A stretch of 59,672 bases of DNA, the filler included, from Platydemus manokwari (Eukaryota): NCBI GenBank assembly GCA_037951405.1. It is 5 parts of 5 records of this genome, joined end to end, with 100 filler letters (N's around TTAATTAATTAA, not from the genome) between each part and the next. Parts side by side here need not be neighbours in the genome. Positions count along the whole stretch, not along the records: positions 13,944 to 26,481 come from JBBMOY010090010.1; 4 more parts are not named here. One strand, given 5' to 3'. A model generated the notes under the pieces. It did no database searches. It was not told where the DNA came from and worked only from the letters and a program-made list of their open reading frames with translations. The translations under genes were made by a program, and so were the position numbers. Position 1 is the stretch's first letter; the number at the start of each line of letters is the position of its first letter. Shown piece after piece: positions 17,101 to 21,100 of the stretch.

Positions 17101-17533
17101 TTGTCCATTCTGACCGGGAGGTCCTGGAGGACCAAGTGGGCCATCAGCTCCAGAAGGTCCAGGACTTCCTGCAGTTCCGGGCGGACCAGGTGGACCGTTG
17201 GGTCCAGGGGGACCAGGAGGTCCTCTCACACCTGGGTCACCCTGAGGCCCGGGAATGTATTGAACCCCAGCAAATGGAGCAGGACCCTTCACACCCTGCA
17301 AAAAGAAATCTTCTGTATTAGCATTCTCTTTTGAAATTCATCTGTTCACGTACAGGTGGCAAAGTCGGTCCATCAGTTGTTTCTCCTCCCGACTGTCTCT
17401 TATGCCTATACAGTGATTCAGCTAAATAACCGAAATGCTCAACCCAATAAGACCTCAACCATTCTCACTCACCAGAAATGAATACTGATAAACAAACGAG
17501 AACAAAGATAACAATCAATTTATTCTCTTGCAT
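14179..17533 (-). CDS. Fibrillar collagen alpha chain A, 3'-truncated by the linker. Exons: 17533-17473, 17421-17354, 17295-16936, 16757-16461, 16404-16179, 15974-15589, 15541-15128, 14923-14665, 14618-14179
   Basis: Signal peptide [21 protein letters not shown], furin-type RHKR, telopeptide-like VKGP, then about 255 Gly-X-Y triplets plus one interruption. All junctions are GT-AG and frame-consistent. Phase-0 intron positions match the vertebrate fibrillar-collagen exon map. The C-propeptide is not in the window. Confidence 0.9.
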
Positions 17534-18103
17534 TTTCTTCAACGAGGAATTGATTTAATCCGCAATAAAATTCCAAATCGAGAATATCTGACTACGAAGT
17601 TATTCTCAAAGATATCTTCAAACAAGGAAGATCCGCCAATTATTTGTTTGTTGAATTCACAGAGTAAAAATCCACAATATAAAATTCAATCTCAATGATA
17701 ATTCGTTGATATTTGCCAGAAAAGATTTCACAATAATGTCGCAAATGGAATCTCGTCTGAAATGGAATAGAATTGATTTATTTCTGTAGCAGCAGTTTAC
17801 CAGTAAATGCCAGTGACATTTTACCGATATCGTTTTCGGATGGTTTTCTTCACTAACCACCTCTACATATTATAGGCGCACATAAGTTCGCACACAGCCA
17901 CACACAGTCACAGGCACACACACACGATTGTGATTTGCAAATAGGGCACATTTTGATAGCGATTTTGACACAAGTATTCCAGTACTGATTCTAACCTTTC
18001 GAAATCTCATAATATATTATCAGAAATAAATCAATTGTGTAAATTTGATCAATTATAACTAGTTTATTGTTTGTTTTAATAATTGAGCCAACAATTTCAC
18101 AGA
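17534..18103. promoter_or_regulatory. Candidate bidirectional promoter and 5' UTRs between the divergent collagen genes
   Basis: Only 570 bp separate the two ATGs. A central TATTATA (about 17868-17874) is followed by a CA-rich block with repeated CACA(CA)G motifs (about 17877-17926). Transcription start sites cannot be seen. Confidence 0.55.
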
Positions 18104-21100
18104 ATGGTTGGCGGAATATGCTTCATGATGACCATGTTGATTGTGGTTTTCAGTGCCATATCGACCCATGCACAAGGTAAGATTTTGTTTCATTCATTAA
18201 CTAATTTGTTGAGTATTATATTTTTGGTGATTTTACTTAATCTTCTGATCTCACGTACTTTAAAGAATTGGTCTAGATTAGGTTCCAGAGGGTTAAATAT
18301 AGATGATTGATTTTGCTCAGGTTTACCTATTTATCGATCAATTACAGTACCATTATCTCAAAGAAACTATGTGTATAATAAAACCCCTATAAAACCTTTT
18401 CAAATCAATTAGGAAAACATCTCGCCCTAATATCTTATTTTAAAAATAAATTATTATTATTATTATTTCCCACAGAAACTATGGTAATAAATACAGTATT
18501 TGTTTTCACTTCTCACTATTTCAGCCGAAAAGAAATAGAGATCTGGTGAAGGAAATTTTATTTCGATTGATTTTTACCTAATTTCATGATTTTCGATAAT
18601 TTCCAAACGAAACGATAAAATATAAAGATGTTTTGATATAAAATATCCTTAAACTAAAATTTAAAAATATTATAATTTGGTTTCCATGATAACATCTTAG
18701 ATAACAAATAAACCTTAAATTGTAATGTATTAATTACTCGTAAAATATTTTTTTGATTTATCTTATTATTCAACTGTATTTTTTAACAACAAATTAAATA
18801 GTCCTTAATCATCTTTTTTTTAAAAATTATCAAATATCAGATTCTTAACCCGTATCGTCATTATTGAAGATGAACTAACAATAAAACTGTTTTCTAGAAT
18901 TTCTGAGATAATAATCAGTTTTATACAAACGATCCGTTTTGATCCAATAGAATCATTTTTGAGATATTTTCCGTGAATGATATAATATTTCAATTGTAAT
19001 GTTGAATTGAAAAATAACAATTAGTGAAAATCAATTCTTTTAGAATCTTGTGTCACTCAAGATGGAACAAAAGTTGGCCCGAATCAGGAAGTCAAGGTTC
19101 GAAATCGTCCATGCATGACTTGTAAATGCGATCCTAATTCTGGGAAAATTAAATGCGCTGCAGATGAATGCCCACCGGTTTCCTGTGGTGAGGACGAAGT
19201 GCAACTGACTGAAGCTGGTTCTTGTTGTCCTGTATGCAAAAGTAATTACTTTCGGCATATGTTTATATTGATATTAGTTTTTCCTTTGTTTCAGAAAAGC
19301 AGAGACCGGTAAGATAATTTTTAAAATAATAATTACCTTAATAATGGATGATGATAATTTTATAATAAAATGAATGAAAACCTTTTATTCATATAATATA
19401 ATTAAGTCGATAAATTATAATTCTCAAGTACAGTTAAGCTTGATAATTGGATTATTTCAGCAACGTGATTTTCCACCAGGAACCACAAGAGAATACACGA
19501 AAGAAATGACAACTGGTTCAACAACAACTGCTGCTCCGCAACAAGTTCGTCGACCTGGTAGACCTGGATTACCAGGACCCAGTGGACCTCCTGGACCACC
19601 TGGACCTCCTGGAGATCCAGGAACAGATGGACCAAACGGAGAACCGGGAGATCCTGGATTACCAGGGAAAGTAATTTGTTTTTGAGTACATATTCATGAC
19701 AAGTATTTTATTTAGCCTCCACACGACGCTAGAAATATTGCAGGAAGGTCAATGTCAGTGAAAGGTCCAGGTGGAAGATCAGCGTCTAATTTTGAACAAG
19801 TCAATCTCAAGATGGTATATTTTAATATTTTAGAATTACCAAGAATTGAGTATAGGGGAAACCAGGAGAACCTGGTCAGCCAGGTCTAGTGGGACCAATT
19901 GGAATTAATGGACCCGTTGGTCCAGTGGGTACTCCGGGAAATCAAGGTCCATCTGGATTGCAGGGATCTAGAGGACCTCCGGGTCCTGTAGGAGAAGACG
20001 GTCGCCCTGGCCCTCCTGGACCAGATGGTTTCAAAGGAGCTTTAGGAAGAAGTGGTATTCCAGGACCAGAAGGTGAAGCGGGCTATAAGGGTACCATTGG
20101 TGCTCCTGGCCAACCGGTACTATATGCATTTAAATATCAATTATTTTTTTTGTTCTAGGGTAAAATTGGTGATATAGGTATAAAAGGCGTAATTGGCAAT
20201 CTTGGACCTAAAGGTCCCATTGGTAAAACAGGACCAAAAGGTCCCATTGGTTTACGAGGTTTAAGAGGAGAGACGGGACCTCGAGGATCCCCAGGAGCAA
20301 TAGGAAAAATGGTATATTTTAATTTCTTTAATGACTATTCAATTCTGGTGCAGGGAATTTCTGGAAATGATGGAGAAGGTGGAACGCCTGGTGACCCAGG
20401 ACCTCAGGGTCTTCCTGGTCCTCAAGGTTTTCAAGGAATTGCTGGACTGAAAGGGTTAGCCGGCCCTACGGGACCGAAAGGTGAACAAGGTTTTCAAGGC
20501 AATCGAGGAGGCCGAGGTATTCCTGGAGTAATGGGGGCAACAGGAAAAAGGGGAGCAGTTGGAGCTCAAGGCGAAAATGGATACAAAGGTGAGCCAGGAA
20601 ATACTGGTTCTCCTGGAAGACCTGGCCAGCCCGGAATGCGAGGTTCACCTGGTATAGAAGGAGAACTCGGTGCAATAGGACTAAATGGACCTGAAGGAGA
20701 TGCGGGTTTACAAGGATCTCAAGGTCTTCCGGGTCAGGAGGGTGTTAAAGGCAAAAGAGGAGAAAGGGGTATTGTAGGGTTACACGGAGAAGCTGGCAAA
20801 AGAGGCATAAGAGGTTCTCCTGGTATTGACGGCCCTCCGGGCTATACTGGAAGTCGAGGTTTATCAGGAATGAGAGGTCCTTCTGGGCACGAAGGCCCCC
20901 CTGGACCACCAGGTGTTATTGGAGATCCTGGATCTCCTGGATCCATAGGAAGCAAAGGAACTCAGGGTGATTTTGGTCCAGCTGGTGTTCGCGGAAATCC
21001 AGGTCCACGAGTAAGAAGCTATTTTTGATTGATATATTGTTCTTATTATTATTACTACTATTTTATTATTAAGATTATTATTGTTATTAATTTATCATAA

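Follow-up and report, generated by a model that had tools for sequence, protein, structure and literature searches.

A divergent pair of collagen genes

The window (the whole stretch of DNA analyzed, 59,672 nucleotides of Platydemus manokwari joined from 5 records of assembly GCA_037951405.1, filler included) contains two collagen genes on the part taken from JBBMOY010090010.1. Their start codons lie at 17533 on the minus strand and at 18104 on the plus strand, and each is followed by a hydrophobic signal peptide closed by a GT donor. The region singled out in the earlier note is bounded by the ends of minus-strand exon 2 (17354) and plus-strand exon 1 (18176). That note had described two dissimilar fibrillar collagen genes arranged head to head within one contig of a planarian, and the arrangement, the contiguity and the host were all borne out. 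In both gene models introns are GT-AG throughout and stop codons are absent. Among public runs, none was an RNA run of this species, and a single run, not of RNA, contained DNA of the locus. A contig of 7321 bp from it, built independently, covered positions 15500-21000 with no differences; the run is probably the source of the GCA_037951405.1 assembly. An assembly or scaffolding artefact at the join of the two genes was ruled out by this junction-spanning contig. Pairs of the COL4A1/A2 type are recognized by head-to-head orientation and a spacer below about 1 kb; here the genes face away from each other across 570 bp on one contig. Coordinates of all features are collected in Table 1.

Table 1. 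Features of the divergent collagen locus (positions count along the window; a dot marks features given without strand).
Feature	Position	Strand	Remarks
Complete fibrillar procollagen gene	18104..25522	+	17 exons, 1508 aa; ortholog of S. mediterranea colF-4
Plus-strand exons 1-6	18104-18176, 19044-19241, 19480-19670, 19716-19814, 19856-20116, 20159-20311	+	
Plus-strand exons 7-12	20354-21010, 21511-22725, 22777-22884, 22933-23418, 23463-23534, 23578-23727	+	
Plus-strand exons 13-17	23772-23843, 23895-24027, 24070-24242, 24293-24526, 25271-25522	+	
5' part of fibrillar collagen gene	14179..17533	-	9 exons, 837 aa; ortholog of S. mediterranea colF-3
Minus-strand exons 1-5	17533-17473, 17421-17354, 17295-16936, 16757-16461, 16404-16179	-	
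Minus-strand exons 6-9	15974-15589, 15541-15128, 14923-14665, 14618-14179	-	
570-bp spacer, candidate divergent promoter region	17534..18103	.	GC 0.33
Third copy of core motif, GAATTGATTTA	17547..17557	+	14-24 nt upstream of minus-strand ATG, in sense of minus-strand gene
Left arm of perfect 16-nt inverted repeat, AATTGATTTATTTCTG	17771..17786	+	238-253 nt upstream of minus-strand ATG
Right arm of inverted repeat, CAGAAATAAATCAATT	18021..18036	+	68-83 nt upstream of plus-strand ATG
'TATA-like' site of the earlier note, CATATTATAGG	17866..17876	.	no TATAWAWR match on either strand
CA-rich block	17891..17922	.	two CACACAG copies (17891, 17901)
Candidate splice-acceptor-like site, TTTCACAG	18095..18102	+	one base before plus-strand ATG
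Candidate acceptor-like site, TTGAAG	17537..17542	-	three bases before minus-strand ATG

The plus-strand gene was read as a single open reading frame; the start of its exon 3 (19480) is the sole canonical option that keeps the frame, yet is uncertain. The encoded chain runs from a signal peptide through a VWC domain, a minor helix of 13 triplets and a main helix of 339 unbroken Gly-X-Y triplets (residues 188-1204) to a COLFI domain. VWC (PF00093) was matched over profile positions 2-57 of 57 at 28.5 bits (cut-off 27.6), and COLFI (PF01410) was matched by four exons at profile positions 2-43, 46-98, 119-191 and 192-233 (26.2, 38.3, 40.7 and 21 bits, respectively). The features by which a fibrillar procollagen is recognized (COLFI, an uninterrupted helix of about 338 triplets, and VWC with a minor helix) were all found. 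In an alignment of the C-propeptide, cysteines 1, 4, 5, 6, 7 and 8 were present and cysteines 2 and 3 absent. The gene is a fibrillar procollagen of classical clade-A layout.

The minus-strand gene leaves the piece at 14179, before the end of its helix and the C-propeptide. In its chain the signal peptide is followed by a short stretch with the motif HKRQ and then by helix, with Pfam Collagen matches down to 1.7e-23. The helix is interrupted: the 779 residues seen have two imperfections, as residue 425 is Met instead of Gly and residues 653-666 form a 14-residue break. The junction of exons 1 and 2 was placed with the help of the N-terminus of Schmidtea mediterranea colF-3, and an alternative (donor 17469, acceptor 17405) was dropped after the same comparison. 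Both genes had been called fibrillar. For the plus-strand gene this was upheld by the domain test; the minus-strand gene, of which the piece holds helix alone, is placed among COLFI collagens through its orthology to colF-3, in which PF01410 lies at residues 1114-1317 (Cote et al., 2019; PMC6453901, Supplementary Data 1).

The two chains are indeed dissimilar. Compared in register, their helices are identical at 15.6% of X/Y (non-glycine) positions, and since this identity is only about 16% the pair is not a recent duplication. No intron position is common to the two genes, and in-helix introns are all of phase 0 in the plus-strand gene and in some cases of phase 1 in the minus-strand gene.

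Pairing and muscle expression of the Schmidtea orthologs

Orthology was assigned by hand counts of identity over short stretches of the colF protein sequences printed in Supplementary Data 1. The plus-strand VWC domain was identical to that of colF-4 at 47 of 63 positions, with the helix continuing in register, and minus-strand exon 3 was identical to colF-3 at 97 of 120 positions, free of gaps. By these counts we assign the plus-strand gene as the ortholog of S. mediterranea colF-4 and the minus-strand gene as that of colF-3. The N-terminal layouts also agree (VWC, minor helix and SVKGP telopeptide in colF-4; signal peptide and dibasic ..RQS motif in colF-3); identity in the compared stretches is about 75-81%, and the signal-peptide sequences are unrelated. 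In S. mediterranea, colF-4 is the sole VWC-bearing fibrillar collagen, and colF-3 has COLFI without VWC (PMC6453901).

Broader searches were less informative. An exhaustive profile search for relatives of the 405-aa helix exon returned no ortholog among the best 150 matches listed, which were generic collagens 35-49% identical, fish and echinoderm collagens among them, and metagenome proteins; a word search with the same exon returned noise alone. A COLFI profile built from the plus-strand exon pieces and starfish and fish domains retrieved mostly fragments of vertebrate collagens XI and V, the best match to the plus-strand gene being 36% identical, and a word search with a 122-aa COLFI reading block gave no match.

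Both Schmidtea genes are assigned to one transcript contig, dd_Smed_v4_649_0_1 (Cote et al., 2019; PMC6453901, Supplementary Data 1), which the table describes as one that 'contains two proteins' and marks with 'cds1 (rev. comp.)'. Their gene identifiers, SMESG000026649 for colF-4 and SMESG000026651 for colF-3, are two apart, and SMESG000026650 falls between them (PMC6453901). For the synteny check suggested in the earlier note, the Schmidtea genes share a contig in opposite orientation; the record is silent on facing ends and spacing, and one identifier intervenes. On this record the pair appears to be conserved in Schmidtea; it is old, and its arrangement is probably conserved across planarians. 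The claim that no description existed was nearly right, as the Schmidtea arrangement is on record solely as a table or technical note; in our literature search no paper was found describing head-to-head, shared-promoter pairing for fibrillar collagens.

Expression in muscle, which the earlier note gave as the rule for planarian fibrillar collagens, is on record for the orthologs. Among colF-2+ cells, 411/413 were colF-3+ and 110/110 were colF-4+, so that each of the two genes is on in virtually every colF-2+ muscle cell. Chan et al. found colf-1 to -6, -8 and -9 to be expressed alike in all mature muscle, and reported helix interruptions in most planarian colF chains. The colF-3 protein has been detected in planarian matrix. 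The same expression in muscle is seen for eight or nine colF genes whose loci are unlinked, and linkage is therefore not needed for co-expression. Because one contig is common to both genes, single-cell values mapped to the Dresden transcriptome are the same for colF-3 and colF-4; as a practical consequence, their individual expression has never been resolved by sequencing.

The spacer and possible shared control of the pair

The spacer contains a perfect 16-nt inverted repeat, whose left arm is oriented to the minus-strand gene in the way that its right arm is to the plus-strand gene. In 300 dinucleotide shuffles the longest such repeat was 13 nt. The window has 4 copies of the core 10-mer where 0.26 would be expected, and the spacer accounts for 3 of them. 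The mirrored repeat and the third copy of the motif, which all read in the sense of the gene they lie closer to, are beyond chance. The midpoint of the repeat (17903.5) falls inside the CA-rich block, where the central CACACAG repeat claimed in the earlier note was recovered as two copies. The central 'TATA-like' site fared poorly: it departs from TATAWAWR, and the consensus is absent from all 570 bp. Scanning of the spacer gave no consensus TATA, MEF2, CArG or muscle E-box and no canonical core-promoter motif; TATA, MEF2, CArG, E-box, Inr, CCAAT, GATA, FOX and NK motifs were at or below chance. The spacer likewise contained no noteworthy ORF and no Rfam family. A structure resembling the collagen 5' stem-loop was sought around the two ATGs and rejected (fold z-scores -0.06 and -0.69; in Rfam, a sub-threshold SCARNA7 match alone).

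The reading we favor, and consider fairly probable, is that of an old divergent fibrillar pair, probably conserved across planarians, whose spacer serves as one compact divergent promoter region. Both genes would start transcription inside the 570 bp and run outward from the CA-rich centre, flanked in the candidate promoter by the mirrored 16-nt elements; such a promoter would help to keep both genes on together in the muscle cells that make matrix. A shared promoter for the pair is plausible, and the apparent pairing in Schmidtea suggests, short of proof, one common control region. This explanation does not require the two chains to enter one triple helix.

A shared promoter is itself not required, because unlinked colF genes have the same expression, and the pair could have been retained passively because rearrangements would seldom hit a gap of only 570 bp. 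The pair may be a relic of an ancient inverted duplication in which each gene has a separate short promoter inside the spacer, adjacency follows from the small gap, and the general muscle collagen programme, rather than sharing, accounts for co-expression. The eight or nine colF genes expressed alike from separate loci fit this account, as do the spacer's lack of a recognizable shared core-promoter motif, the saturation of the paralogs at X/Y positions (which makes the duplication very old), and the differing intron positions and in-helix phases. A mirrored 16-nt element with a third copy would, however, be unexpected in neutral sequence so old, and the pair has apparently been kept in Schmidtea. 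We regard passive retention as rather unlikely.

By analogy with COL4A1/A2, and in line with the candidate heterotrimer of the earlier note, the shared promoter might instead set the ratio of a single heterotrimer made of an alpha1-like chain with VWC and an alpha2-like chain without it. Pro-alpha1(I) has a VWC domain and pro-alpha2(I) lacks one, a contrast that the present pair resembles. Both helices are apparently about 1017 residues long (measured for the plus-strand chain, taken from domain positions for colF-3), and the plus-strand C-propeptide has neither cysteine 2 nor cysteine 3, positions at which vertebrate changes accompany chains found in heterotrimers. Yet without Cys2 and Cys3, interchain bonds of the vertebrate type would be impossible with any partner. 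Chain selection would be decided by the C-propeptide of the minus-strand chain, which lies beyond the piece. The Gly-to-Met change and 14-residue break of the minus-strand chain, set against a perfect plus-strand helix, are a mild counter-argument, as known fibrillar heterotrimer partners match in register, and the many co-expressed colF chains would be equally available as partners. A promoter serving one heterotrimer is improbable.

Start sites might also lie elsewhere. Acceptor-like sites directly precede both ATGs (TTTCACAG and TTGAAG), which leaves room for 5' UTR introns or for spliced-leader trans-splicing, as planarians trans-splice some mRNAs; if these AGs were used as acceptors, at least one of the two genes would not have the 570 bp as its promoter. 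In a divergent pair, however, an upstream non-coding exon would be confined to the spacer or to the other gene, and the joined Schmidtea contig, if that pair is head-to-head, implies overlapping 5' ends extending into the spacer. We consider start sites elsewhere quite improbable. Very unlikely, and rejected, is a MITE-type, non-regulatory insertion of the repeat and its interior (17771-18036, 266 bp): its perfect 16-nt terminal inverted repeats around a 234-bp interior have the expected form, but there is no target-site duplication (flanks ..AATAG and GTGTA..), the third motif copy lies outside the putative element, and the segment looks single-copy, being crossed unbroken by the k-mer-built contig and matched by no other contig of the run at 95% likeness.

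Comparison with known collagen genes

Head-to-head orientation with a shared promoter is regarded as a signature of collagen IV. COL4A1/COL4A2 and Drosophila Col4a1/vkg have the same layout as the Platydemus pair, in which paralogous collagens of different classes diverge from a short spacer. Here, in contrast, the genes are COLFI fibrillar rather than C4-domain collagens, and a shared promoter and co-assembly are candidate features, whereas a single shared promoter and alpha1-alpha1-alpha2 co-assembly have been demonstrated for collagen IV. In planarians the collagen IV genes are unlinked and their pairing is reported lost. It is conceivable, though doubtful, that while the ancestral head-to-head collagen IV pair dissolved, a conserved bidirectional promoter of the fibrillar pair came to fix the ratio of an obligate colF-4/colF-3-type heterotrimer; if true, such a heterotrimer would be a convergent solution to stoichiometry, for which vertebrate type I collagen uses unlinked genes. 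A conserved divergent fibrillar pair would offer a compact example of linked matrix-gene regulation that lends itself to testing, in animals in which muscle is the source of matrix and RNAi, FISH, ATAC-seq and matrix proteomics are established.

The plus-strand gene shares with COL1A1, COL2A1, COL3A1 and COL5A2 the full clade-A layout and COLFI cysteines 1 and 4-8. As in vertebrate clade-A genes, its helix introns are of phase 0 and some of its exons, of 108 and 486 bp, fit the 54-bp multiple. It differs from them in that most helix exons have fused, reaching 1215 bp, that cysteines 2 and 3 are lacking, and that about 37 residues follow the ..GPVCF end. Vertebrate fibrillar partners are encoded by unlinked genes; col3a1 and col5a2 form a linked pair.

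Structure of the two collagen genes

Both gene models were put together manually, following reading blocks and splice signals, and every splice site in them is a prediction. The plus-strand gene extends from an ATG at 18104 to a stop at 25522 (17 exons, all introns GT-AG, 1508 aa, no internal stops), and the minus-strand gene was followed from an ATG at 17533 to 14179 (9 exons, GT-AG introns, 837 aa), where it leaves the piece carrying both genes (13944-26481, JBBMOY010090010.1) before the end of its helix and its C-propeptide. The two ATGs diverge and lie 570 bp apart, bearing out the head-to-head layout claimed in the earlier note, whose limits (17354 and 18176) are the ends of minus-strand exon 2 and plus-strand exon 1, respectively. 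The piece is AT-rich, with collagen coding sequence on both strands and (AAT)n microsatellites at both ends, which probably explain the assembly break and the loss of the 3' part of the minus-strand gene. Assembly of the sole public run containing this DNA with another assembler gave a 7321-bp contig that spans 15500-21000 with zero differences, so the two genes were not brought together by scaffolding; the genome assembly itself probably derives from this run, and the contig is hence not an independent sampling.

Features of the two genes, the spacer and the piece (positions along the whole stretch)
Feature	Position	Strand	Remark
Plus-strand gene, signal peptide	exon 1, 18104-18176	+	
Plus-strand gene, VWC domain	exon 2	+	28.5 bits (cut-off 27.6)
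Plus-strand gene, minor helix	after VWC	+	13 triplets
Plus-strand gene, telopeptide	between minor and main helix	+	short non-helical exon
Plus-strand gene, main helix		+	339 Gly-X-Y triplets, no breaks
Plus-strand gene, COLFI	four exons	+	jointly cover profile positions 2-233
Minus-strand gene, helix imperfection 1	15739-15679	-	Met for Gly at residue 425 (..GKNMQPG..)
Minus-strand gene, helix imperfection 2	14806-14714	-	14-residue non-triplet break, residues 653-666
Inverted repeat, perfect 16-nt	17771-17786 and 18021-18036		234 nt between arms
Third core copy of the repeat	17547-17557		near inverted repeat, outside arm-to-arm unit
(AAT)n microsatellite ends of piece	13944-13994 and 26405-26481		

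In the C-propeptide of the plus-strand gene (23895-24027, 24070-24242), aligned with those of one fish and one starfish, cysteines 1 and 4-8 are kept and 2 and 3 are missing. Cysteines 2 and 3 make the interchain bonds in vertebrates, so trimer selection by this chain cannot obey the vertebrate cysteine rule. The protein ends in a tail of ~37 residues past the usual ..GPVCF end of COLFI (25421-25519). Exon 3 was started at 19480, the sole canonical frame-keeping option, although the true acceptor is uncertain: just 5' of it (19461-19479), an in-frame ..QQRDFPPG.. resembles the linker ..LRDYPAAV.. of Schmidtea mediterranea colF-4 and has no in-frame join to exon 2 by canonical splice sites. The acceptor could be displaced, the splicing could be non-canonical, or the assembly could be wrong by one base.

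The minus-strand gene begins with a signal peptide and a short part with a dibasic HKRQ motif (..YRHKRQS.., exon 2, 17421-17354); its exon 1/2 junction was set by comparison with the N-terminus of S. mediterranea colF-3. In S. mediterranea colF-1, -3, -5, -6 and -7 (PMC6453901), too, an R.(K/R)RQ-like motif comes after the signal peptide, which hints that fibrillar collagens of planarians undergo convertase-type processing at the N-terminus. At both helix imperfections the DNA is clean and in frame, and no canonical intron that would excise either was found.

The two genes are dissimilar, as the earlier note stated, sharing 15.6% of non-glycine positions (in register, 366 helix residues). Their intron positions never coincide, and helix introns are all phase 0 in the plus-strand gene, while two in the minus-strand gene split Gly codons. 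A recent inverted duplication was rejected on this identity and the non-matching introns. Some plus-strand exons are multiples of 54 bp (108, 486 bp), beside fused ones as long as 1215 bp; introns of both genes (18104-25522, 14179-17533) are mostly 41-58 bp, the longest being 867, 744 and 500 bp.

Orthologs and their expression in Schmidtea

Protein searches for close relatives of these genes found none, and among public runs no RNA run contains the locus. Comparison was with Cote et al. 2019 (PMC6453901), whose Supplementary Data 1 gives every S. mediterranea collagen up to about residue 440; the identities to these proteins are hand counts on the truncated sequences. The plus-strand gene matches colF-4, the one fibrillar collagen of planarians that bears a VWC domain, at 47 of 63 positions in that domain, and the match extends through the linker, minor helix and ..SVKGPGGRS.. 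telopeptide, then into the helix in register. COLFI of colF-4 stops 36 residues short of the C-terminus (PMC6453901), in agreement with the extension of the plus-strand gene, and the tail seems conserved between the two. Exon 3 of the minus-strand gene is identical to colF-3 at 97 of 120 positions, ungapped, and an N-terminal ..SL.R..RQS.. and a second stretch are common to both. Because colF-3 (1318 aa) carries COLFI at residues 1114-1317 (PMC6453901), the minus-strand gene is fibrillar by orthology. These likenesses make the organism a planarian related to, yet distinct from, S. mediterranea.

In the same data, colF-3 (SMESG000026651) and colF-4 (SMESG000026649) both lie on transcriptome contig dd_Smed_v4_649_0_1, which the table notes as coding for two proteins, one in reverse complement (PMC6453901, Supplementary Data 1), from which it follows that they are adjacent, on opposite strands, with transcripts near enough to co-assemble. 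The table note is silent on facing ends; a head-to-head pair conserved in Schmidtea is the simplest reading and a very likely one. The pair goes unmentioned in the text of that paper (PMC6453901), and a literature search found no published report of head-to-head or bidirectional fibrillar collagen genes. The claim that the layout had not been described stands in that this search found no paper describing it, and is qualified by the table note (PMC6453901), the one earlier trace.

Double FISH found 411/413 colF-2+ cells positive for colF-3 and 110/110 for colF-4 (PMC6453901), Chan et al. report colf-1 to -6, -8 and -9 alike across all mature muscle, and colF-3 protein is present in decellularised matrix. 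colF-3 and colF-4 are co-expressed in muscle, as are most unlinked colF genes. Their single-cell values are identical (AUC 0.948, 8912 cells; PMC6453901, Supplementary Data 1) because the two share one Dresden transcriptome contig, and atlases mapped to that transcriptome are unable to separate them.

The spacer between the ATGs

The CACACAG pair was confirmed at 17891 and 17901 of the spacer (17534-18103), with a CA-rich block. The 'TATA-like' site proposed beside it does not fit the TATA consensus, and the spacer holds no consensus TATA box; TATA, MEF2, CArG and muscle E-box consensus sites did not exceed chance across the 570 bp. No Rfam family was found in the spacer, and the surroundings of the two ATGs showed no stable RNA fold. 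Splice-acceptor-like sites are predicted immediately 5' of both ATGs.

The mirrored 16-nt element is non-random, its length being reached in 0 of 300 dinucleotide shuffles (maximum 13), and its midpoint falls within the CA-rich block. Its 10-nt core occurs four times in the window (0.26 expected), three of these in the spacer, each reading in the sense of the nearer gene. Within the arms, TGATTTAT is a candidate PBX-HOX composite site by its likeness to such sites. A transposon origin of the unit is unlikely, given the lack of a target-site duplication and the third copy outside it, and is further weakened by the k-mer-built contig, continuous through the unit with no other contig of the run matching there.

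Interpretation of the pair

Both fibrillar procollagen genes are anciently diverged, the plus-strand gene intact to its stop and the minus-strand gene open to the piece edge. We infer that the spacer rather likely serves as a compact divergent promoter region that would drive both. The main rival, in which an old inverted duplicate has been retained passively and each gene has a promoter of its own, is possible and appreciably less likely. That the two products assemble into a heterotrimer, as first proposed, is improbable: nothing more than analogy speaks for it, and both the mismatched helix imperfections of the two chains and the many other chains made by the same cells speak mildly against it.

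The divergent arrangement can readily be put to the test in Schmidtea, and the reading of expression data for colF-3 and colF-4 needs correcting in its light. Divergent pairs are a common gene arrangement. In planarians, the collagen IV genes do not lie head-to-head (Cote et al., PMC6453901), and a later survey concurs. The head-to-head fibrillar pair described here is real, and the arrangement is probably conserved.
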